DNA of 64,000 nt from the NCBI GenBank assembly GCA_950097015.1, contig CATNEN010000007.1:1240001-1304000 (forward strand). Reading direction: 5' to 3'. Below, piece after piece: positions 2,679 through 18,772 of the stretch. The position numbers were made by a program, and so were the translations under genes. Numbering within the stretch: position 1 is the first letter of the stretch; every line of letters starts with the position of its first letter. The stretch is from Macrostomum hystrix (taxonomy: Eukaryota; Animalia; Platyhelminthes). The notes beneath the pieces were generated by a model. That model saw only the letters and a program-made list of their open reading frames with translations, did no database searches and was not told the origin of the DNA.

Positions 2679-4720
2679 TAATCTCTATTCAGGCATTAAT
2701 TCAAGAAAGTCTTTGTTTACTAAATATTTAGCAGGACAACCTTCCGCAACCTCAACCTTTATCACTTTCCGATTTAAAAAATGATCAAGAAATCAAAGCA
2801 AGACCCATGGGTCGGTATTTTGAGTAGGCTTATGATGCTTAAAATATTAGTAACAAGCTTCTTAATAGGGCCGGGGACTGCGGATAGACGTGGGTGAGTA
2901 GTTTTGTGCTCACAGGCGGTGTTATTGATGGCGTGTGTTGGTTGGGGCTGCTCACACAGCTACAGCTCAAAATGTTTATTTAATCGTATATCATAATAAG
3001 AATAAGTATTTTTAATTTAGTACTAGTAATGTAGCAAATAGTTGTTAGCCCTGCATATAGTGTGTGCATGTGTGTTTGGTGTGTCTTATTTCTGATGCAC
3101 AGTATAAGCTACAGTTAATCACACACACATAATATATATGTAATATAACACACTAAATTCGCTCTAATTACCATACAGATTATATAGCAAGTGCAGGTAC
3201 ACGGTTTGACAAATAATATAACAATAGAAGTTTAATTATAACAAAATTGTAATTACAAAAGAAATAAAAAAGACCGAAAAAAAGCAACTAAGAAAAGAAA
3301 TTAATATTTTTACCTGAATTCTAAAGAAATCCAATAGAACTTATTATCCAGAGAAACCAACAATTTGAACACAAAAAGAGATCAGCTATAGTCTACTGAT
3401 TAGTTAGAAGCAGTAGTATATTACGCACTCCGAATTGCATAATGTGTAGAAAAAAACAACAGAAACAAAATAGAGCGACGAAAATACTCGACAGACTACT
3501 GACAGGGCAGCTTTAAGTAGCTAGCTATGCGCATTTTAGGATAATAAAAATCGAATTAGCTTAATTAAACACCGATGCTCATCACAAACTGAAATTAGTT
3601 TATTTAAATTCTATTATTATTTCTTAGAGTTCAGCGAGTGAAATCAATTTGTCAAGCCAGTTAACAACTGATAGTTTTCATAGTGAGAGACAGGGGCTGG
3701 GAGTGGCTGTGAGAGAGCGGCTCAGTAAAAACCTTTGCAAAACAACTGGATTAAAGATATAAGAAAATTGTGAGTTTAATAATAATCAACTTCCATTTTT
3801 AACTAGTTTTTAACAAAAAACACAAAGCAAAAGCAAGCAATCAGAAGCTACTGCTGTGCTTCATAATTAGGCAAACAACAACGACGACTCAACTTGAATC
3901 CCACCTAGGAAAGTAAACGCAGTGTCGCAACTCCTTTGGTAGCCTCTCCGAACTGCTAATCAGTTAGTTTATTTTTATTTATTGTGCAAAAACTTGCCCG
4001 AAAGGCAACTGCGCTACTATTACCTGCCTGCGACAGAAGCAGAGAAAAACAAAAGAAAACTTTTTTTCTGTTCGAAATATTTACACAGAAAAGAAAACCG
4101 ATCGTCAAAAAAGAGCTCTATATTTAATAAATCCCGCACACTGCGCTCCGCTGTTATTGTTGCTGGGTGCCGATTGGGGAAATAAAAAATCAATAGAAAC
4201 AAAAGAACAGAAACAACACACTGGGGGGGTATGTTAGCTAATCTACTTGAAAATAACAATAAACACAAGATGGAATTACCTAATAGAGCAATAATAGAAA
4301 TGTGCAGCATTTTCTGTTATCAATTCAGTTGGGTCACAGTATGACCGATTCAAGGAAACACATCAATCAGTAACTATTATAGATTTATGTATTCATAGAC
4401 ATTAACATAGGACTGCCAATCAATGAGTTTTAGTATAAGGATCGCTAAAAAATAAACATTAACACAATAGTAAGTAACAAACGAACAAATATGCGAGAGC
4501 GAATAAAAACTGCTAATTTATTGGGAACTCTAAGACTGACAGACAGAGTGTGAGGATGGGACCGAGGGCTGTAAGCTAAGGAGGAGTTCGCGCACTTTTG
4601 CACTAAAACATCTGCCTTTGTCCATCTGGGCCTAAAACACTGTCTCCGAGCAGACTTCCATGCCGCTGCTGCTGCTGCTGCTGCTCCACTTGCATAGCTG
4701 AGCACAATCATCAGGCTGAC

Positions 4721-4899
4721 TCAGAGGCCGCCGCCGGTGGCCTCCGACTGACCAGCGGCGTCTGACGAGGTCTTGGCAGCTCCGCCCTCGCTGCCACCGT
4801 TGCCACCAGCGGAGGCTGCAGCCGCGGCAGCAGCAGCTGCCATGCTCATTGCGTGCGGCGGAATCAGAGTGCTGTTCAGCTCCGGCTTAATGGCCAGCT
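4721..4899 (-). CDS. GSK3: Glycogen synthase kinase-3, last coding exon
   Basis: Acceptor accgcag| at 4900-4901, phase 1. Reads (E)LAIKPELNSTLIPPHA...poly-Ala...GGGL-TGA and continues PPLFNFTPA from the previous exon, as in the GSK3 C-terminus LFNFTxxELS. Confidence 0.85.
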
Positions 4900-4904
4900 C
4901 TGCG

Positions 4905-5842
4905 GTGATTGTGGGTGGCATTTGACGGATTAGGGCCATTGTGGTTGGTATATGACGGATTAGGGCCATTGTGGTTGGCATTTGACGGATTAGGGCCATT
5001 GTGGTTGGTATATGGCGGATTAGGGCCATTGTGGGTGGCAGATGGCGGATTAGGGCCATTGTGGGTGGGATGGCGGATTAGGACCATTGTGGTTGGCATA
5101 TGGCGGATTAGGGCCATTGTGGTTAGCATATGGCGGATTAGGGCCATTGTGTTAGGCATATGACGGATTAGGGCCATTGTGGTTGGCATTTGACGGATTA
5201 GGGCTATTGTGGTTGGTATATTGCGGATTAGGGTCATTGTGGGTGGCAGATGGCGGATTAGGGCCATTGTGGGTGGCAGATGGCGGATTAGGACCATTGT
5301 GGTTGGCTGATTGCGGATTAGGGCCATTGTGGTTGGCATATGGCGGATTAGGGCCATTGTGTTAGGCATATGACGGATTAGGGCCATTGTGGTTGGCATT
5401 TGACGGATTAGGGCTATTGTGGTTGGTATATGGCGGATTAGGGTCATTGTGGGTGGCAGATGGCGGATTAGGGCCATTGTGGGTGGCAGATGGCGGATTA
5501 GGGCCATTGTGGGTGGCAGATGGCGGATTAGAGCCATTGTGGGTGGGATGGCGGATTAGGGCCATTGTGGGTGGCAGATGGCGGATTAGGGCCATTGTGG
5601 TTGGCATATGGCGGATTAGGGCCATTGTGGTTGGCATATGGCGGATTAGGGCCATTGTGGGTGGCAGATGGCGGATTAGGGCCATTGTGGGTGGCAGATG
5701 GCGGATTAGGGCCATTGTGGGTGGGATGGCGGATTAGGGCCATTGTGGGTGGGATGGCGGATTAGGGCCATTGTGGGTGGCAGATGGCGGATTAGGGCCA
5801 TTGTGGGTGGCAGATGGCGGATTAGGGCCATTGTGGGTGGGA
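4905..5842. repeat. 30-bp G-rich minisatellite filling the last GSK3 intron
   Basis: Unit GGCGGATTAGGGCCATTGTGGGTGGCAGAT, about 31 copies, with 26-bp variants; begins immediately at the splice acceptor. Confidence 0.97.
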
Positions 5843-5883
5843 TAATCAAGATCAAATGAGGAGAGCAGGCCACGCTGACTCAC

Positions 5884-6086
5884 CGGCCGGGGTGAAGTTA
5901 AATAGAGGCGGCAGCGGTTTGTTGCCGGGCAGGCGGGTGCCCTCCAAGCGCAGCTCGTCAAAGAACGGGTGGCAGCAGGCTTCAAGCGGGCTGATGCGCA
6001 GCTGGGGGGTGTACTCCAGCAGCCGGCTGACGAGGCTGATGGCCTCTGACGGAGTGCGCGGCCGGAACACTTTGGCCCAAGGATGG
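5884..6086 (-). CDS. GSK3: GSK3 exon (C-lobe end)
   Basis: [46 protein letters not shown]...[10 protein letters not shown]. Acceptor at 6087-6088; donor G|gtgagt at 5882-5883. Confidence 0.95.
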
Positions 6087-6317
6087 CTGCGGCGAGCGGA
6101 AAATGGGATTAGAAGATTAACTTTTCAATTACCAAAATACTTGTAAAACTAACTTATTGAAACAGTAGATATCCAATTATGAAGTCCATCGAGTTTTTTT
6201 TACACAAAACTGAAATTTCATTAACTAATAAAAATGCACATGAAAACTTCATGTATTAAACAAAAAATAAGTCCTTTTTGACAACACAGAAATTCTATGA
6301 AATAAGCAAAAGTCTAA

Positions 6318-6895
6318 CTTAATACACCATAGAAATCATATTTAATACACCATAGAAATCATATTTAATACACCATAGAAATCCCACTTAATACACCATA
6401 GAAATCCCACTAAATACACCATAGAACTCCCACTTAATACACCATAGAAATCATATTTAATACACCATAGAAATCATATTTAATACACCATAGAAATCCC
6501 ACTTAATACACCATAGAAATCCCACTAAATACACCATAGAACTCCCACTTAATACACCATAGAAATCATATTTAATACACCATAGAAATCATATTTAATA
6601 CACCATAGAAATCCCACTAAATACACCATAGAAATCCCACTTAATACACCATAGAAATCCCACTTAATACACCATAGAAATCCCACTTAATACACCATTG
6701 AAATCCCACTTAATACACCATAGAAATCCCACTTAATACAGCATTGAAATGCCACTTAATACACCATAGAAATCCCACTTAATACACCATAGAAATCCCA
6801 CTTAATACACCATTGAAATCCCACTTAATACACCATAGAAATCCCACTTAATACACCATAGAAATCCCACTTAATACAGCATTGAAATGCCACTA
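6318..6895. repeat. 23-bp minisatellite in a GSK3 intron
   Basis: Unit TTAATACACCATAGAAATCCCAC (variant ...ATCATAT), about 25 copies. Confidence 0.96.
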
Positions 6896-7060
6896 ATTAA
6901 TAGAGCACAGAAATCCTATTTAATACACAAAAGACATGCCATTGATTACACAACAGAAATCCCTTTCAGTACACCAATATCAATAACCAAATGTAATTTC
7001 TATTTAAGACACAACAAAAATGCTGTCTAAATTCGAGATGAGCAAACGCACGGAACTCAC

Positions 7061-7238
7061 CCCTTGATCTGCGGAAACTTGAAGTCCGTATAGTTGGGAT
7101 TCATCTCGCTGATCTGCTCCCTGGTGGGGGTGCCCAGCACTTTGATGATCTCAACCAGCTGGTCCACGCCAGTCTCGCCTGGGTAGATCGGCTTGCCCAG
7201 GAGCAGCTCGGCGAGGACGCAGCCGGCGGACCAGACGT
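7061..7238 (-). CDS. GSK3: GSK3 exon (subdomains IX-X, Axin-binding region)
   Basis: [59 protein letters not shown]. Acceptor at 7239-7240; donor gtgagt at 7059-7060. Confidence 0.95.
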
Positions 7239-7344: not shown

Positions 7345-7570
7345 TATATGGGATTGAGATTATATAGGATTTGAGATAATATAGGATTTGAGATTATATA
7401 GGATTTGGGATAATATAAGATTTGAGATAATATAGGATTTAAGATTATAAAGGATTTGAGATTATTTAGGATTTGAGATCATTAAGTATTTGAGGTTATT
7501 TAGGATTCGAGGTTTTATAGGCTTTGAGATTATTAAGGATGTAAGGCTTTTTAGGATTTGAGATTATAGG
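7345..7570. repeat. Degenerate ~19-bp tandem repeat in a GSK3 intron
   Basis: Recurrent ATAGGATTTGAGATTAT motif. Confidence 0.8.
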
Positions 7571-7676
7571 GGATTTGAGGGTGAAATTTTATGAAGTCTG
7601 GTGTTTAGAGAATTTATAGTAGTCATGTTTGATTTTCGGGATTTGATAAGATGGCTATGAAGACATTGTGACGCAC

Positions 7677-8025
7677 CAATCTGGCAGGTGTAGTTGGTAG
7701 CGCCAAAGATGAGCTCCGGGGCGCGGTAGTAGCGGCTGCAGATGTAGGACACATTGGGCTCGCCGCGCTGCAGATGCTTGGCGCTGCCAAAGTCGCACAA
7801 CTTGAGCACGCCGGACTCAGGGTCCAGCAGCAGGTTCTGCGGCTTGATGTCGCGATGACAGATGCCCTTGCTGTGAATGTAGGCCAGCGAGCGGAACATC
7901 TGGTACATATAGAGCTTGATGAACAGCACGGGTATAGTCTGCATCTGCTTGCTGTAATGGCGGCACACTCTGTACACTGTCTCAGGGATGAACTCAAGCA
8001 CCAGGTTGAGGTAAACTTCGTCCTT
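7677..8025 (-). CDS. GSK3: GSK3 exon (catalytic loop and activation segment)
   Basis: [20 protein letters not shown]...[12 protein letters not shown]...KLCDFGSAK...[23 protein letters not shown]. Acceptor at 8026-8027; donor G|gtgcgt at 7675-7676. Confidence 0.97.
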
Positions 8026-9115
8026 CTGTGGATTAGCAATTTTTTAAGAAAAAAAATTTTTTGGTTACTAAGGACATTGTTGCTAATCAAAACACATTTA
8101 TTTCTAAGGGCATTGATGTCAATTAAATCGTTTGCCTTTTACAAAGCCCGTTTTAGTTAAGTATGGAACCGTTTGTTATTAGCCGTAATATTCTAGTTAC
8201 TAAGGTCAATAGGTCATGGTCCGTAACCAAGACAACCATTGAGGACAAAAAATATTGTTTAGTCGGGTGAAACAAAGAATGAGACAAAGGATGAAATAAT
8301 TAACCAGTCTTGAAAAATCAACTGGTTAGTTTTTATATGCAAAACAATATCTTATTAGATAGAATGAAAGCTACCTTATTATATAATAACAGAGATAAAA
8401 GTATGGCCTGGGTCCACATATTAAACTAGTGGAAAGAAATGCCACTATCAGTAAAACCTAGACTGTACAAAAGACAGACAGACGGATTCACGAAGTAAGT
8501 ATGTGTGATTAGGCAGGTGAATAGAAATTTCCATTTATAAACTAGTTTTATTATATTATTAGACCTCAGGGTCAAGCCAGACAGACAGGTAGGCCAAGGC
8601 TGTTTCATTACAGCAAAGCTATAGATACACACCCTGCAGGGCTAGATCTATTGGTTAATTATTATTCACAATTATAGATCGATTACTTGCATTTTGATGT
8701 AAGTTTTGTAAGATCGAAAAGGTGCAATACTGCAGGAATGGGGTTGGGAAAGACCCACATTAAGGAAATACGTTATTTTCCCCCCTGGTGAAAGACCACA
8801 GGGTATTTCAAATACCCGCTGCCTACTTCAGGATAGCTCCCAAACCGAATGATCACCATCTGTAACAAAATATTCCGCCCTTTACGATGAACTAACTTTC
8901 AAAGCCGTTTTTGAAAGTTTTGTGATTCTGGAAGTATTTTCATTATCATTCGATCATATCGATTATCATTTTGGGAAATACAGAAAGAATACGAATGTGA
9001 GCGATTGAAATATCCCAATTGTCTCGGTTTAATATTAAGTGTTTGCAATGCAGTTTAGCAACTATTTTGCATAAGTCATGTTGTATAGAAACAAATAGCA
9101 CAGCTGTCAGCTGAC

Positions 9116-9390
9116 CTTCTCTCCACTAGAATAGAAGAAGTATTTCAGAGTGACAATGTTCTGGTGCTCAATTGAGCGCATGATTTGCAATTCTCGATTC
9201 TTGAATCGCTTGTCCTGCAGCACCTTCTTAATGGCCACAATCTCCTTGGGTTCGACCAGTTTGGCTTGGTAAACAACGCCAAAGCTGCCGTTGCCGATGA
9301 TCTTCATGTCGGTGAAGGAGATCTCTTGGGCGCGATCGCCCTGGCCTGGTGTGGCTATCACCGTATTCACCTTTGAATCTTTTGGTGTGC
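9116..9390 (-). CDS. GSK3: GSK3 exon (N-lobe)
   Basis: [17 protein letters not shown]...[15 protein letters not shown]...[21 protein letters not shown]...[11 protein letters not shown]. Phase-1 acceptor at 9391-9392; donor AAG|gtcagc at 9114-9115. Confidence 0.95.
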
Positions 9391-10172
9391 CTGGTGGAGT
9401 GTTAAAAAAATATATATATAATTGGCTTTGGGAATATAGTGATTCACATTTACACTTTTACATTAATAAGACAACAACTATACAGTAATAAGAACAAATT
9501 AAACATAACAATAACAGGAAAATTTTGATGTAGAATATAAATTACCAAAGCATAGAAAAAAAGTTAAATACTAAAACACGAATAGTGTTCTTTGTTCTAC
9601 TTAATTAGAAGCAATAATGTATTTTTGTATAAGCTCATTTCACTTTTAATTTAAACCTAGAATTGATAAACGATATAGGACCTAGATGCCACATAATAAG
9701 ACCACCATAGCAGGAATGACAAGTCAATAAAACAGATTTAAAGTTTCTTTTTGATAGCTCATGGAATGGTTGGGTCTAGTTTGCTATGAATAAGCTAACG
9801 ATAGGTTTGAAATCTGTTTTATTAAAGCACTTTGTTTCTAAAGACTTTTAGTCAATCCTACTACTACCCTTACTAATTTATAATTTAATTGTCAAACAAT
9901 AAACCATTTAAATACTTGCATTACTTGCAAACTAAGTCTGAGTCATAACTAATATTTATTTTTTTAAATAGATGCTAGAGCTGACCTGTTTATTATTAAT
10001 GCCAACTATATATTATGAAATGGCACATCCAACTTTTATCACTTCAGCCATTCATACTTCTCCAAGCTTTGATATTCTTGGTAATTTACCTTGAAAAATT
10101 AAAAGTAAACTAATTTTAAAATTAAGTCATTGGATTTTATTACATATTAATCATAAAATTAGCTTGACCTAA

Positions 10173-10482
10173 TAATAAAAATAATAATAATAATAATTGA
10201 TTACACCTGCCCTAATCGGGTCAGATGTGCAGCCGACAGCACAGCCGCAGCTACTGCGCGGTGCATCTGAAAGCTGCGTATGGCTGTTCAGTCCATGGAC
10301 TGGGGGGACGCCATGCCCACCTTCAATTATCCCAGCTGATGCTGGTACCCATTTAACAGCTAGGTGAACTGAAGCAATGCAGAGTTAAGTGTCTTGCTAA
10401 AGGACACAAATTGTTTAAGTGGAGACGGGAATCGAACCCCCGACCTTCAAGTCATGAGTCCGATGCCCTAAGCACTAGGCCC
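10173..10482 (-). mobile_element. Near full-length tRNA-derived CORE-SINE (family B) with (TTA)n tail and 8-bp TSD
   Basis: The minus strand shows an A-box-like GGCCTAGTGCTTAGG and a B-box GGTTCGATTCCC. The segment CCCATTTAACAGCTAGGTGAACTGAAGCAATGCAGAGTTAAGTGTCTTGCTAAAGGACAC resembles the reverse complement of the MIR core as I recall it. Poly(TTA) tail; TGACCTAA is duplicated at 10165-10172 and 10483-10490. Confidence 0.8.
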
Positions 10483-11216
10483 TGACCTAAAATTAGAAAT
10501 AATCATAGAACAGTGACTTTATATTTGACTGGTCAGGAACACTTCTAAATCTTAGTTTCATAAACTTTGTTGTAAGCATACTAAAATAAACTCTTTCTGA
10601 AAATCAATAAAGGAATGGAGTTACAAAAATTCTATTGCAGTTTTGTCAGAGCAGTGGGTTGCAATTGTCAAACATATTCTTCTTCAGAATTATTCTTTCT
10701 GTTACAAGTTTCATTATGTTGAGTATTTTTTATCCTTCTAAAGTCTAACAATATTTGTCATGTTTAAACATAGCTAGCTATGCTAGTGCTACTGCTAGGC
10801 ATAGACCTCTATAATAAGCTAGGCCTAGGCCTAGGCTAAATTGGGCAATGTAGAAAAGCCAAAATTTACACAATTCAAGAAATGCTAAATAAATTTAGTA
10901 AATCTGTAAAGCAAATAAACTCAACTATAATATAAAATGTAACCTATGTCATGTTCTTATTAGGTTGTTAAATAAAAAAACAGTAACATGAGGTCAAACA
11001 AAGACATGCTGGCATAATAATTTCTGTACAGATAGAAAGGTCTAAAGAATCTGCAACTCCAAAGAAATAAATACCTAGCTAATTCTTAAGCAAACAAAAA
11101 GAATTTAAGTTGCACTTATGCTAAAATAGCAAATATGTAACTGGACAGTTAAATTTAATGTACAGATACATGATGACAAGAAAAACGTTTTTAGCTACAC
11201 TGGAACATTGGCCTAC

Positions 11217-11261
11217 CTGCTGGTTTCATCTTAAATGCAGCAGTCAGTTGAAAGACATCAA
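11217..11261 (-). CDS. GSK3: Candidate 45-nt GSK3 5' exon, (x)DVFQLTAAFKMKPAG; ATG at 11229
   Basis: Acceptor tttcttag| at 11262-11263; donor CAG|gtaggc at 11215-11216; phase 1-1, in frame with the 9390 exon. [16 protein letters not shown] resembles vertebrate SAFGSMKVSR-DKDGSKV. Confidence 0.6.
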
Positions 11262-11902
11262 CTAAGAAACAGTTAAATCCCAGATGATTATCTTTACTTA
11301 ATATTTTTGTTCTGCGTTGGAACCAGTTGATATTGGGGATCAAGGCAATTACATATGATACGTCACCATGACACTAAGGAAAAAATATGAAATAGTTTAC
11401 GTGTTTGAAATCGGTGCTAAAGTTAATAACTGAGCTAACGACATATTTCACAAAAGTAAAAGCCGGTAAATAAAACGACAGTAGCTATTTAAAATAAGAA
11501 CAGTGTTTCTAACCTGAAATTGGCCAACAGTTTGTACTTAACTAGATCGCTTAAACGATATTGTTTTCAGTTATTATGGCAATATTAAGCCATGAAGCAT
11601 GCAAAGTCAGTTGAAAAGACAAGGTAAAAATCTGACAAAGTCAGATGCGCTATGTTAAGACTTCTAGACGTGTTATCTCTCCTAAAATAACTAAATTACC
11701 TGTTTGAATTACATGATTTATTGCATAATTAAATGATAAGCGTGTATAAAATTTTTATGCTGCGTAAATAAGTACGCGAATACGCTTGGCTGCCAATCAG
11801 TGTAATTTTAAACAATCTAACAGTGAGTTTTTACAATTATAGATATTATATTAAGTCATTGTACGAGAACTAATTCTAATTTTGAAAACTTTTGCATCCA
11901 TA

Positions 11903-12175
11903 TCAAATATAATATTTGTGCTTCCGAATGCAGCCGTTGTAGTCGCACACTGTCGCCTCACTGTAGGGAATCAGCCGCGGACGACTGCCAGACAATGCTC
12001 TGTTGACTTCCTCACAGAGCTGTGCCACAGTTGGCCGCCTGCCCTGGCAACCGAACACCAGAACATTGTTGACGTGCACGGAGATGCAGTTGTAGGTTGT
12101 CGTGTCCTCGCGAGCCAGGACAAAAACCTTGGAGTGAAATTCCTGCTCCAGACCAAGGCGAAGGTCGTGAAACAC
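11903..12175 (-). CDS. Small protein of unknown function, exon 2
   Basis: Acceptor ggcag| at 12176-12177, phase 0. Reads VFHDLRLGLEQEFHSKVFVLAREDTTTYNCISVHVNNVLVFGCQGRRPTVAQLCEEVNRAL...stop. AATAAA lies about 180 bp downstream on the minus strand. Confidence 0.6.
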   Translation of the reverse strand: MFHDLRLGLEQEFHSKVFVLAREDTTTYNCISVHVNNVLVFGCQGRRPTVAQLCEEVNRALSGSRPRLIPYSEATVCDYNGCIRKHKYYI

Positions 12176-12257
12176 CTGCCGAGTTGAATAATTAACGGTT
12201 TTGCGCCGGATCGCAAAACGAATCTCGACTCAACACGCGTGCCTCTCACCAACTCAC

Positions 12258-12491
12258 CTGCTCACCGTGATTTCCGTTTGCGCACATGGTGCCGTAGGTT
12301 ATAATGACTTCCACCAGGGCGGCAGCTCTGATAGCGCTCACATTCTGCTCCTCCTGGTCGGTGAGCTCGCGGGCCTCTCCAATTTTGCTATTACGATAGA
12401 CAATTCTGGAGCTCTTTCTCAGCGGGTTTTTGATGGCGCGACCCGAGGTTCGGGCGTAATGAGCAGTCTCTACCAGCCAGGGGACCGACAT
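12258..12491 (-). CDS. Small protein of unknown function, exon 1
   Basis: ATG at 12491; strong donor CAG|gtgagt at 12256-12257; an 82-nt intron joins in frame to exon 2, giving 168 aa in total. Confidence 0.6.
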
Positions 12492-13726
12492 TCAGCTCTG
12501 CCGTGTGTCTGAGCTCTACTCAAACTGATCCAAACTAGCCGATTAATGCTCGAATTCAAAGCAAAACAAGCTTACTTGATTTCAGACTAAATCAATTTTA
12601 TGTTAAGGCAAGTAATTTTTTAGCTTAAACTGGCTTTCGACCACAGACAACCAACCACCTTCTACGCTCGTATTTCATAAAAAGACAAGACACAGGATAT
12701 ACTACAGGTATAATTATATACCAGTTTTATGAAGTTTGGCCATAGACTTTCAAAATGAGGACATCCAGCTGAAAAGAAAAGCCACGTTAAACACGCCATT
12801 AGTTGATTTCGGTAGGTTAAATTACAAGAATATAAAAACGTTTGTCTTTCTATAATATAGCCTCGATCTATATTAAATTCATTAGCATAAAAAATCGTAG
12901 CAATTAATTAAACAAATCAGGATATGTAGGTCCACATGGAACAAAGGTCAGCGCACACTGAAGGATATATCAGCACTGTCACTGAGGCCGAGACAACTAA
13001 ACTCAAAATTGCTGATCTCTAAACACAAAACTAATATAAGCGAGCATTTGTGTACTTATTGTCGGATATCTCAGCACTGTCACTGTCAACAGTTCTCCTA
13101 GCTCAATCGTGAGTGTGTCAGCTGCTGCTCAGCTTGCCTCCGAGTAGTACTCAGCCTGGAATTAGCAGAGCGGTGAGCATGAGTGCATTATTGGCAAACA
13201 ACTGTCAGACAGAGGCACAAGCTCACATTGGGATCGGGTAGGAGACCCATAGCAACAGTCGCAGCCTCCCTAGCCGGCAGGGCCCTGGCTTCGCTCTCGT
13301 GACCAGCGGCCGCTCGCCTCCTCGAAGCGGCGAAGGCAGCTGCGCCGACTGTAACAGGCAGTGAGCAGCCGAGCGCTATGCTGAGCACAGTGCTCAAAGT
13401 AGAAATCCTGTGAGCGGCAGCTGAGGGCATGTCGATGTCAACTACACTCACTCTCACAGCACATGTGCTAATGATTTCGAATAGAATATAGATTAAGGAG
13501 TTCGAGTCGCTAAAGAGAGATTTACCATAGACAGTGAGGCTGCGGTTTCTCCAGTCGACAAGCATTTCACCCTGCTGGAATTTGCAGCTGATGTACTTTC
13601 CGTTGTGATGCACCTCGACCCGAAAGCAGAAATGCACAGCGAGATTCAAGCCTGCCGACTTGGCTTCAGCTGCAGCAGTGCCCTGCGATTTGTTTAATTC
13701 ATTTCGAGTCAAGCAACATGATTAAT

Positions 13727-15637: not shown

Positions 15638-18600
15638 CAAGCCTGGTATTCTGTGGAGAAGGAACGCCCGGAATACTGACTGGACGGCCTTTGCGGAATC
15701 CGTGAAGCGCCAGACCAACCAGTTAGAATCCGTTGTTCCTGCCACCTGTCAAGAAGTGGACGATCTGGCTGATCTACTCAGCATGACCATCTTGACAGCT
15801 CATGAAACCTCTTGCCCTCTTAAAGCCTACAAAGGCAAAAAATCCGCTCCCTGGTGGAACCCAGCGCTTGGAACCCTCCGGCGAAAGGCCAAATCCCTCC
15901 AGCGGATTGCGCGGAAAAGCAAGGACCAAGCTGACCTGACCGCCTACCAGAATGCGATTCGTGACTTTAAGCGTGACACCAGGAAAGCGAAGTCCGAAAA
16001 GTGGCGCCAATACTGCTCCGAGCTGGAGGGCGCCCGCCCAACTTCTCGCGTTGTAAAAGCGCTCACTCTTGACAAAATGTCGAAGCTCTCAGTGATCAAA
16101 AGACCGGACGGCCGGCTTGCTGAGAATCCTGGCGAATCGCTGGACATCATGCTCGCCAGCGCCTTCCCCCAGACTGCGCCGCTTCAGGACCCGCCGGACC
16201 ACACTCCGGGTGGACACATCCTTGCGACAACTATTATCACTAGAGAACGGACAGCTCGCGCTGCTAACTCCTTCTCGCCTTTTAAGTCGCCTGGACCTGA
16301 CAACATTTACCCCGCCTTCCTACATGAAGCGGTAAAAAATGACAGGTTCCTCGGCCTCCTTTGCAACCTGTTCAAGGCCTGTATCACCCTCGGGTACGTA
16401 CCCAGGTCTTGGCAGGAAGCCACTATCGTCTTCATCCCCAAACCTGGGAAGGGAGACTACCACTCCGCCAAAGCCTTCCGCCCCATCAGCTTAACATCTT
16501 TCTTTCTTAAGCTGCTTGAAAGGCTTGTTCTTTGGCGCCTCCTTCACGTTGAGCTGAGGAACTCCCCGCTCTCCGCCAACCAGCACGCCTTTCGATCCGG
16601 ACGTTCCATCGAAAGTGCTCTGCATGCCATTGTCGACAAGCTGGAGCGCGCCGTGCTTGGCACCGGTTTTGCTCTCTCGCTTTTCCTCGACATTGATGGT
16701 GCCTTCGACAATGTGCTCTTCGGAGCCTTTAGGCGAGCCCTGGAACGCCGGGCTACGCACGAGCACCTCACCCGCTGGATCATGTATATGATCTCTCACC
16801 GAACTGCCACCTCGCACCTGCTTGGACACTCCCGTTCTGTGAATGTCCAGAAGGGAGGCCCGCAGGGTGGCGTTCTCAGTCCGATCCTTTGGAACCTTGT
16901 CATGGACGAACTGCTCTGCAGCCCTGACCCGGACCCGGTCCAAAGAATCGGCTATGCTGACGACGTCACCGCCACCGTGGCCGGACCGTCTCCCCCGGTC
17001 CTTAGAGACCTTCTGCAAGCTTTCATCCACCGTGCCGAACGCTGGGCCAATGGCTGCGGCCTCAAACTCTCTGAGTCCAAGACCGTCGCCATTATGTTCA
17101 CCAGCAAACGAAACTGGAGGATTGAGCCTCTCCTTCTCTATAACAAACCAATCGCCATGGAGAAGCAAACCAGATGCTTAGGTGTCATCCTCGACCACAG
17201 GTTGAGCTGGACACCTCACGTCAAATTCAAAACCCGTAAAGCTCTTGCGACGCTCGCGCAGATTCGCAGAGCCTTCGGCGCCACCTGGGGCCTCACCCCC
17301 CGCCGTCTCTGGTGGATTTACACTACCATTGTAAGACCGGCCATCTCTTTTGCCGGCTTCATCTGGAATAGTGCCCTGGAGACCAAAGGGGTCCTGGAGG
17401 CCCTAAACAAGGTGCAGGGCCGTGCTTGTCGAGCCATCATGAGTGCGGCACCCTCCACTCCCTTCGCTGGCATGAATGCCTTCCTGGACCTTCCCCCTTT
17501 AGATCTTTTTATCAAGGGGGAGGCGATGAAGACGGCTCGTCGTCTTCTGGACGCGGGTATCTCCATCCGGAAGCAACTTGCCTTCAGCAAGCGGAACCTC
17601 CAGCCCCATGGCGACCTCAGCCTACGGGACCTGGACGCAGCAGGAGGTCTCAAAATTCTCTCCGACGGAATCCCGTCGACGCTGTGCCCACCGCAAAAAT
17701 TCAAAACCAGCATTCCGCCTCGCCAGGAAGTACGTGACCACGGCCAACCCCGTGAAATTCACTGCTTCACCGACGGATCGCAAATCAACTCGGTCTCTGG
17801 TTTCGGCTACTGCATTATGTCCGGAGGGAAAACTGTGGCGACCTTCTCCCAGCACACCGGCATAAACTCTACTGTTTTCCAGAACGAAGTTCTGGCCATC
17901 AGCTCCTGCGCCCTGGAGCTGATCTACCAAAACGTCCATGGAGCAGAAATCTTCCTCCACTCGGACAGCCAGGCGGCGATCCATGCCCTTGGACGCACGC
18001 ACACCTGCTCGCGCACAGTCCTCGACTGCGTCGCGCAACTCAACCGCTTAGGGACCCACAACAAGGTGTCCCTAAGGTGGATTCCAGGGCACTCTGGCCA
18101 CCCTGGTAACGAATTGGCCGACAGCCTCGCCAAGGCCGGTTCGACGGGTTCGCTTTTTGGCCCCGTGCCTGCGGTCTCCACCCCTACCGCCGTCGTCAAC
18201 ACTCGGATTAACCAGTGGGTGACCTCAAAGCACAAGGACAGATGGATCAATACCGCCGATTGTCGGCAGTCTCGCGCTGCTGTCCCTTGTCCCTCCACTG
18301 CCCTTCGCAAAGCCTTGCTTGGACTGAACCGCAAGGACATCAGGGCAGTCACCATGGCCCTCTCTGGCCATGGCTGTTTCGCCAGGCACCGCTTCCTGCA
18401 AGGCAAAATCCGCAGTGAGGAATGCCCCTTCTGCCTCTCCTATGTTGAGGATGCAGAGCATTTTATTTGCGACTGCCCCGCCTTCACTCAGGACCGGCTC
18501 ACCTATCTCGGCCCAAACCCGGATCTCCCCGACGTTTTCAGGCCTGAGAACATCTGCCAGCTCGTCCGATACCTGAGGGCCACCGGGCGAGCAACCCTCC

Positions 18601-18772
18601 ACCTCCTGGACACTCCGGAGGAGGACCGCGCTGCGGACGCCGGCACCACCGGATCCCCCTGCGCGACACCGCAGCTCTAGTTGCCCGTGGTCGCCAGGGG
18701 CTAGCGGAATGGGCGGCAACGCCTCCCCGCTGCATCCGGAAGATGCCCCCTGCAGCTAAGTCAAGTAAGTCA
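15638..18772 (+). mobile_element. 5'-truncated non-LTR retrotransposon, I-group (Loa-like), RT + RNase H
   Basis: Uninterrupted ORF2 remnant, then a short 3' UTR and an AAGTCAAGTAAGTCAAG tail. No APE endonuclease or ORF1 is present. Confidence 0.92.
15702..18680 (+). CDS. LINE ORF2 remnant: reverse transcriptase, RNase H, C-terminal Cys/His motif
   Basis: RT: [49 protein letters not shown]. RNase H: [40 protein letters not shown]-terminal CPFC...EHFICDC. The frame is also open upstream to about 15639 (RNARNTDW), so the 15702 GTG is not a true start. Confidence 0.93.

Follow-up and report, generated by a model that had tools for sequence, protein, structure and literature searches.

This study concerns a GSK3 protein kinase gene and its small upstream neighbour in the flatworm Macrostomum hystrix, both located in a 64-kb window (GenBank assembly GCA_950097015.1, contig CATNEN010000007.1, positions 1,240,001 to 1,304,000 of the forward strand), the window being the whole stretch of DNA that was analysed. 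All features of both genes lie on the minus strand, and positions are those of the window. With a probability of about 0.85, this is an ordinary locus made of two independent transcription units, one for a small protein of 168 amino acids and the other for a GSK3 without the Ser9 tail, whose mRNA starts at or near 11368. The first-pass annotation of this DNA had proposed that alternative splicing could fuse the small protein to the kinase, and that the RPRLIPY motif of the small protein was a decayed form of the RPRTTSF motif found at the GSK3 N-terminus.

The small gene consists of a 168-codon open reading frame (ORF) in two exons (12491-12258 and 12175-11903), and the GSK3 gene follows about 640 nt further on; the genes are arranged head to tail on the same strand with about 400 nt between them. 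The stretch 9000-12600 was matched in seven public sequencing runs, and Logan contigs of four of these were aligned to 7650-13600. Three of the four (X4, X5 and X6) are runs of one study, and the fourth (X1) is a run of another organism. Small-gene contigs, with a depth of 15-21, begin at 12570 or 12575, run to 12258, skip an intron of 82 nt and resume at 12175; having crossed position 11961 and the stop codon colinearly with the genome, they end at 11762 (X4), 11808 (X5) and 11792 (X6). The X1 contig is likewise colinear across 11961. GSK3 contigs, with a depth of 109-160, begin in X4, X5 and X6 exactly at 11368, which is position 1 of the contig record with no additional letters. They are colinear with the genome from 11368 to 11217, across position 11261, and continue with 9390-9116, then 8025-7677, and then exon 4 by way of a loose end. 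The two genes are represented by separate contigs in all three runs, at depths that differ about 7-fold. Contig depth falls to zero at 11431-11629, between the genes, and there is therefore no sign of a read-through precursor.

The joints assessed are the one across the small-gene intron of 82 nt and those from 11217 to 9390 and from 9116 to 8025; four more joints stand outside this set. Of the junctions that the first-pass annotation had singled out for checking, 11217 to 9390 is present, and neither 11962 to 11261 nor 11962 to 9390, nor any joint into 11261, occurs among the joints assessed in the four runs. The stretch 11261-11217 had been described as a 45-nt exon opening a kinase of 398 residues. 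It is indeed flanked by tttcttag on its 5' side and GTAGGC on its 3' side, and it contains the start ATG AAA CCA GCA G, from which the 398-residue product with its MKPAG head is read. However, since the contigs are colinear from 11368 to 11217, the acceptor-like tcttAG at 11262-11268 lies unused inside the first exon of GSK3, and the supposed exon is the 3' end of a longer one of 152 nt.

A similar correction applies to the donor side. The predicted phase-1 donor, TAC A/GTGAGG with its GT at 11961-11960, is present in exon 2 of the small gene (11955-11962). It is made of a serine codon, AGT, and a glutamate codon, GAG, of the small-gene coding sequence, and every contig that covers it reads straight through. 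Joining 11962 to 11261 does give, on paper, the uninterrupted frame of 558 codons that had been predicted, and the direct join of 11962 to 9390 is also in frame, with 546 residues. Occasional use of this donor would thus produce a minor chimeric isoform of 558 or 546 residues, in which the small protein precedes GSK3. In favour of such an isoform, the frame is open in both joins, the two splice signals (A/GTGAGG as donor, ...tttcttAG as acceptor) are respectable, the genes share a strand at a distance of about 400 nt, and contigs drop rare variants. A phase-compatible GT in the upstream ORF followed by 11 open codons is, however, no more than chance gives. The joint is missing among those assessed in four runs, all contigs over 11961 are colinear, and the gap in depth between the genes speaks against a common precursor.

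Further evidence against the chimera comes from Macrostomum lignano, whose assembly GCA_002269645.1 encodes an orthologue of the small protein (P0001). There the motif reads RPQLIPY-QAAS, and the codons CAG GCG stand where the window has AGTGAG, leaving no GT, although the tail behind LIPY is kept in length (21 residues) with 12 of its 21 residues conserved. Downstream of the P0001 gene, the next gene called is not GSK3 and has the opposite orientation, and no GSK3 exon was found within 10 kb. Neither the adjacency of the small gene to GSK3 nor the pseudo-donor is conserved in M. lignano. Taken with the transcript data, in which the 11961 donor was found unused at the level of assembled contigs (which would miss a rare isoform), these observations run counter to the proposed fusion by alternative splicing and make even a minor chimeric isoform extremely improbable. 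The idea that RPRLIPY is a relic of RPRTTSF also has to be given up, as the motif belongs to a small protein that is conserved in M. lignano, where the tail is retained, the GT is missing and no GSK3 follows within 10 kb downstream; its likeness to the GSK3 tail is a chance resemblance.

The first exon of GSK3 (11217-11368) comprises a 5' untranslated region (UTR) from 11368 to 11230, an ATG at 11229-11227 and 13 nt of coding sequence that specify MKPA and the first letter of the next codon (G, phase 1). The ATG at 11229 is the first in frame within 11368-11217 and has an A at position -3. The resulting head is about 25 residues shorter than that of vertebrate GSK3 beta and holds no RxRxxS motif. 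When the alignment of exon 2 is extended without gaps, Met1-Lys2 fall on vertebrate Met26-Lys27, the vertebrate head being seen in the fragment P0010, and nothing in the Macrostomum GSK3 corresponds to the 25 vertebrate residues with RPRTTS9F. Two upstream ORFs were noted in the 5' UTR, an ATG-TAA at 11354 (11349-11354) and a four-codon MSFN followed by a stop at 11258 (11244-11258); they might dampen translation of the kinase.

The short head is shared by a paralogue. In the 220-Mb genome only two GSK3 loci were recovered, with 100% and 87% identity, the next match having 36%. The second locus lies on the minus strand of contig C38 (6213781-6214128), where exon 3 is 87% identical to that of the window gene. 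The coding sequence of the C38 gene opens with ATG AAG CCA G/gtaagt, joined to VASFGEQKV. The two genes agree in exon-intron layout and in a start of the form ATG AAR CCA G interrupted by a phase-1 intron, and their exons are 73-87% identical; they differ in the residues after the start, which are VASFGEQKV in the C38 protein and AGTPKDSKV in the window GSK3. Upstream of the ATG, the C38 gene shows no open frame, a stop codon being reached after 9 codons, and no copy of the small gene was found within about 8 kb upstream. The shared MKP and phase-1 intron therefore support MKP as the true start and indicate that the head was already short when the gene was duplicated. The earlier prediction that this GSK3 has no Ser9 is in this way sustained twice, by the mRNA contigs from 11368, whose first in-frame ATG opens MKPAG, and by the only other GSK3 locus in the genome, which also begins with MKP.

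In order to find a separate exon for the missing tail, both strands of the window were scanned for the motif R[PAS]R[TSA]xS[FYLW], and the minus strand was scanned up to 30 kb for ORFs that start with ATG, end in phase 1 and contain RxRxx[ST]. No exon of the RPRTxSF type was found between the genes, where the first-pass annotation had already reported none, nor in intron 1, nor credibly anywhere else in the 64 kb. Two motif matches were set aside: RPRNLSF (about 16357) runs antisense to the 992-residue ORF of a long interspersed nuclear element (LINE) at 15702-18680 on the plus strand, and RPRAPSW (24754) is part of a low-complexity stretch and lacks a start codon.

A Ser9-type head could still be encoded by an alternative first exon that is specific to a stage or tissue, absent from the sampled RNA and spliced to 9390, as with the isoforms of Drosophila shaggy. 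The GSK3 genes of other animals do use alternative 5' exons, shaggy being described in PMC7339944 as encoding several isoforms, and the RNA contigs come from the runs of one study only. Against this, the window scan offered nothing beyond the antisense RPRNLSF and the startless RPRAPSW, intron 1 holds no candidate, the upstream region is taken up by a LINE and by one or more other transcribed genes, and the C38 paralogue has the same MKP start. Such an exon is accordingly considered unlikely, and the absence of a Ser9-type pseudosubstrate tail from the window GSK3 is supported. N-terminal GSK3 fragments that do carry the site have RPRTTSF, RVRAPSF or RIRATSF heads in Limulus, fish, shark and the sponge Geodia (RVRAPSF in Geodia). 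Since a sponge, a chelicerate and vertebrates thus carry RxRxxSF, the absence in Macrostomum is most simply interpreted as a secondary loss. Literature searches turned up no relevant paper on whether flatworm GSK3 has Ser9.

Another reading of the mRNA start is that the GSK3 transcript is trans-spliced, with the AG at 11375-11374 as acceptor, and that the AUG of a spliced leader opens an N-terminal extension of 49 residues with a basic RRTKILS stretch. The exact 35-nt spliced leader of M. lignano, which has an ATG at its end (PMC8629364), is present at no fewer than 23 places in the genome, so at least the leader is available, and ...ttttttccttAG/TGTCAT is a good acceptor, with the contig end lying 5 nt downstream of its AG. 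The 48 codons from 11373 to the ATG (11230-11373) are free of stops, whereas 5-6 stops interrupt each of the other two frames, a difference with a chance of about 0.03. However, three contigs begin at 11368 without a leader or any other non-genomic letters, and such letters would have been retained, because contigs elsewhere reach a variable base (7910, beside a variant at 7909). The stretch is non-coding in composition, with a G+C of 0.35 and a G+C at third codon positions of 0.33, compared with 0.76 at third positions of the coding sequence. In addition, the C38 paralogue has its stop 9 codons upstream of the ATG, and in M. lignano trans-splicing does not affect about 70% of the genes (PMC8629364). 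Trans-splicing at this AG is therefore very unlikely, and a minor GSK3 isoform with a new N-terminal head, whether through a leader AUG at 11374 or through rare use of the 11961 donor, is decidedly unlikely; if it did occur, the new head would stand in, in this lineage alone, for the Ser9 pseudosubstrate that was lost. As a separate observation on the leader itself, exact copies of the 35-mer recur at a spacing of about 11.7 kb on contigs C15, C17 and C42, and a variant with 3 mismatches (...CTCTCTTTTTTGCATG) sits in a 927-bp tandem array on contig C39 (12.667-12.686 Mb). Both may be arrays of leader-RNA genes, of two different kinds.

Several points weigh against the account of two independent units with a short-headed GSK3. 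The runs X4, X5 and X6 are labelled '?' and were taken as RNA since their contigs skip GT..AG introns, so that their RNA nature is itself deduced. Assembled contigs attest presence and not absence; rare variants are dropped from them, and an isoform would escape if it were rare or confined to a stage or tissue outside those sampled in these three runs of one study. Position 11368 is a contig end and not a mapped cap. As regards the loss of the tail, the fragment search returned many animal GSK3 N-termini, none of them recognisably from a flatworm.

The kinase itself is a well-preserved GSK3. Database and family searches were made with single exons or with retrieved proteins, the joined models of 398 and 168 residues being used only in frame checks and local tblastn. 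Exon 2 (9116-9390), which runs from TPKDSKV to SSGEK, includes the glycine loop, K85 and R96 and is bounded by RNA joints on both sides; exon 3 (7677-8025), joined to it in four runs (8025/9116), carries the HRD catalytic loop with R180, the DFG motif, K205 and Y216. Both exceed the cut-off for the Pfam protein kinase family (PF00069), with E=1.1e-12 for exon 2 and E=3.6e-27 for exon 3. The top matches in the PDB are all GSK3 beta or alpha, at residues 34-122 for exon 2 (E=1.3e-39) and residues 123-237 for exon 3 (E=2.9e-64), residue 4 of exon 2 being aligned to residue 34 of the full-length human GSK3 beta chain. According to these HMMER alignments, in full-length numbering, K54 and R65 of exon 2 correspond to K85 and R96, and R58, K83 and Y94 of exon 3 correspond to R180, K205 and Y216. 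The catalytic K85, the priming pocket R96/R180/K205 and the activation-loop Y216 are all intact; for the pocket and Tyr216, this agrees with what had been claimed from the sequence. Relative to vertebrate GSK3 beta (PDB 1I09), the window GSK3 is about 80-88% identical in exons 2 and 3 and shares the kinase core with K85, the pocket and Tyr216, as well as the C-terminal LFNF...LIPPH segment. Unlike the vertebrate enzyme, it has no residues 1-25 with their RPRTTS9F, and it ends in an Ala/Gly-rich tail.

GSK3 is a crossing point of Wnt and insulin/PI3K signalling, and Macrostomum is a model for regeneration and stem cells. The first exon of the window gene, mostly 5' UTR, supplies just Met-Lys-Pro-Ala-(Gly) to the protein. 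From the sequence features described above, the enzyme would be constitutively active on primed substrates. Its control would run through tyrosine autophosphorylation and the formation of complexes (Axin/Wnt) instead of phosphorylation of an N-terminal serine by Akt or other AGC kinases. If both GSK3 genes truly have no Akt-target serine, insulin/PI3K-Akt signalling cannot turn GSK3 off in Macrostomum by the textbook route, and antibodies against phospho-Ser9 would be meaningless in this animal.

A GSK3 without a phosphorylation site of the Ser9/Ser21 type is already known in Dictyostelium, whose GskA resembles the window protein in having no N-terminal inhibitory serine (PMC3776220). Unlike GskA, the window GSK3 is bilaterian, and its absence of the site is thus probably a secondary loss and not a primitive state. 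Ser9/Ser21 knock-in mice are cited in PMC3776220 as viable, and cells from such mice showed no mitotic defect (PMC3776220). Because kinases without Ser9 are known and the knock-in mice are viable, the mechanism is not new; the present result is an annotation point together with a small evolutionary observation, that of a probable secondary loss within animals.

In the small gene, exon 1 (12258-12575), which is supported by contigs of X4, X5 and X6 and by the ORF, contains a 5' UTR from about 12570-12575 and 78 codons (12491-12258). The intron at 12176-12257 has GT..AG ends and is 82 nt long; its joint was recorded in three runs as 12172/12255, skipping 82 nt with CT..AC ends (cut +3). Exon 2 (11762-12175) comprises 90 codons and the stop (12175-11903, the stop at 11905-11903), and a 3' UTR ending at about 11762-11808. 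The genome holds one copy of the small gene. Further upstream, contigs of X4 only, with a depth of 2.6-4.7, cover 12986-13436 on the minus strand and overlap an ORF of 174 residues (13188-13712); this region may be another small transcribed gene.

The small protein has few recognisable relatives. Exon-wise searches of Pfam and NCBIfam gave nothing above threshold, a word search with exon 2 gave no match, and the best hit of a PDB sequence search had E=1. An exhaustive search of 1.8 billion representatives returned one true relative, P0001 of M. lignano (162 residues, 70% identity over exon 2); the second match, a repeat protein, was taken as spurious. For the family UPF0728 (PF15092), exon 2 scored 13.5 bits (E=0.065), well below the gathering cut-off of 27 bits, and P0001 scored 14.2 bits (E=0.038) in the same register, again below the cut-off. 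In the ESM Atlas, P0001 falls close to Rdx or UPF0728 clusters and to thioredoxin-like folds, and its Atlas model, with a predicted local distance difference test score (pLDDT) of 0.65, reached a template modelling score of 0.52 to MIEN1/Rdx at best and of 0.40-0.48 to thioredoxins. A single-sequence AlphaFold model had a pLDDT of 38.9, too poor for a fold search, and showed a beta-alpha-beta-beta-beta order. With the consistent, though sub-threshold, Pfam register of the two proteins and the Atlas neighbours, UPF0728 (C10orf53-like) and Rdx or SelW-like proteins of thioredoxin fold are the nearest candidates for the small protein. The small protein differs from the UPF0728 and Rdx families in having about 50 extra N-terminal residues and no evident CxxC or CxxU redox motif. 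These comparisons suggest a protein so far restricted to Macrostomum that possibly adopts a thioredoxin-like fold of the UPF0728 or Rdx type.

The complete GSK3 model has six exons, encodes 398 residues from the MKPAG start and shows GT..AG ends at every intron. Intron 1 (9391-11216) is 1826 nt long with 32% G+C, and its joint was recorded in three runs as 9389/11216, skipping 1826 nt with CT..AC ends. In exon 3, the X4 contig is interrupted between 7866 and 7909, and X1 has G for A at 7909, differences that are probably due to allelic variation. The first 30 nt of exon 4 (7061-7238) form the loose end of the contigs at 7677 in X4, X5 and X6; this exon has GT..AG boundaries and 85% identity to the paralogue. 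Exon 5 (5884-6086) lies outside the stretch used for contig alignment and was placed by its frame, its GT..AG ends and 73% identity to the paralogue. Exon 6 (4721-4899), which encodes ELAIKPELNSTLIPPH... and the Ala/Gly-rich tail and ends with the stop at 4723-4721, was placed by frame, an AG acceptor and its match to the paralogue.

Repeats occupy much of the non-coding sequence of the GSK3 gene. The intron before exon 6 is filled by a 30-nt tandem repeat, and the intronic stretches 4908-5844, 6317-6963 and 7345-7579 consist largely of tandem repeats of 30, 23 and 17 nt in 14-31 copies with 78-91% match. The 30-nt array yields long fake ORFs (MALIRHLPPT...) on the GSK3 strand, and a further array of 24 copies of 46 nt lies downstream of the gene at 1587-2679. 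Intron 1 contains a dispersed repeat of 266 bp (10215-10485, minus strand), the 5' part of which is tRNA-like (GGTTCGATTCCC box), although ARAGORN called no tRNA in this head. More than 2,400 candidate copies were counted in the genome, the top 40 having 92-96% identity, and RNA contigs of the repeat reach a depth of 2,800-5,300; it probably represents a young family of short interspersed nuclear elements.

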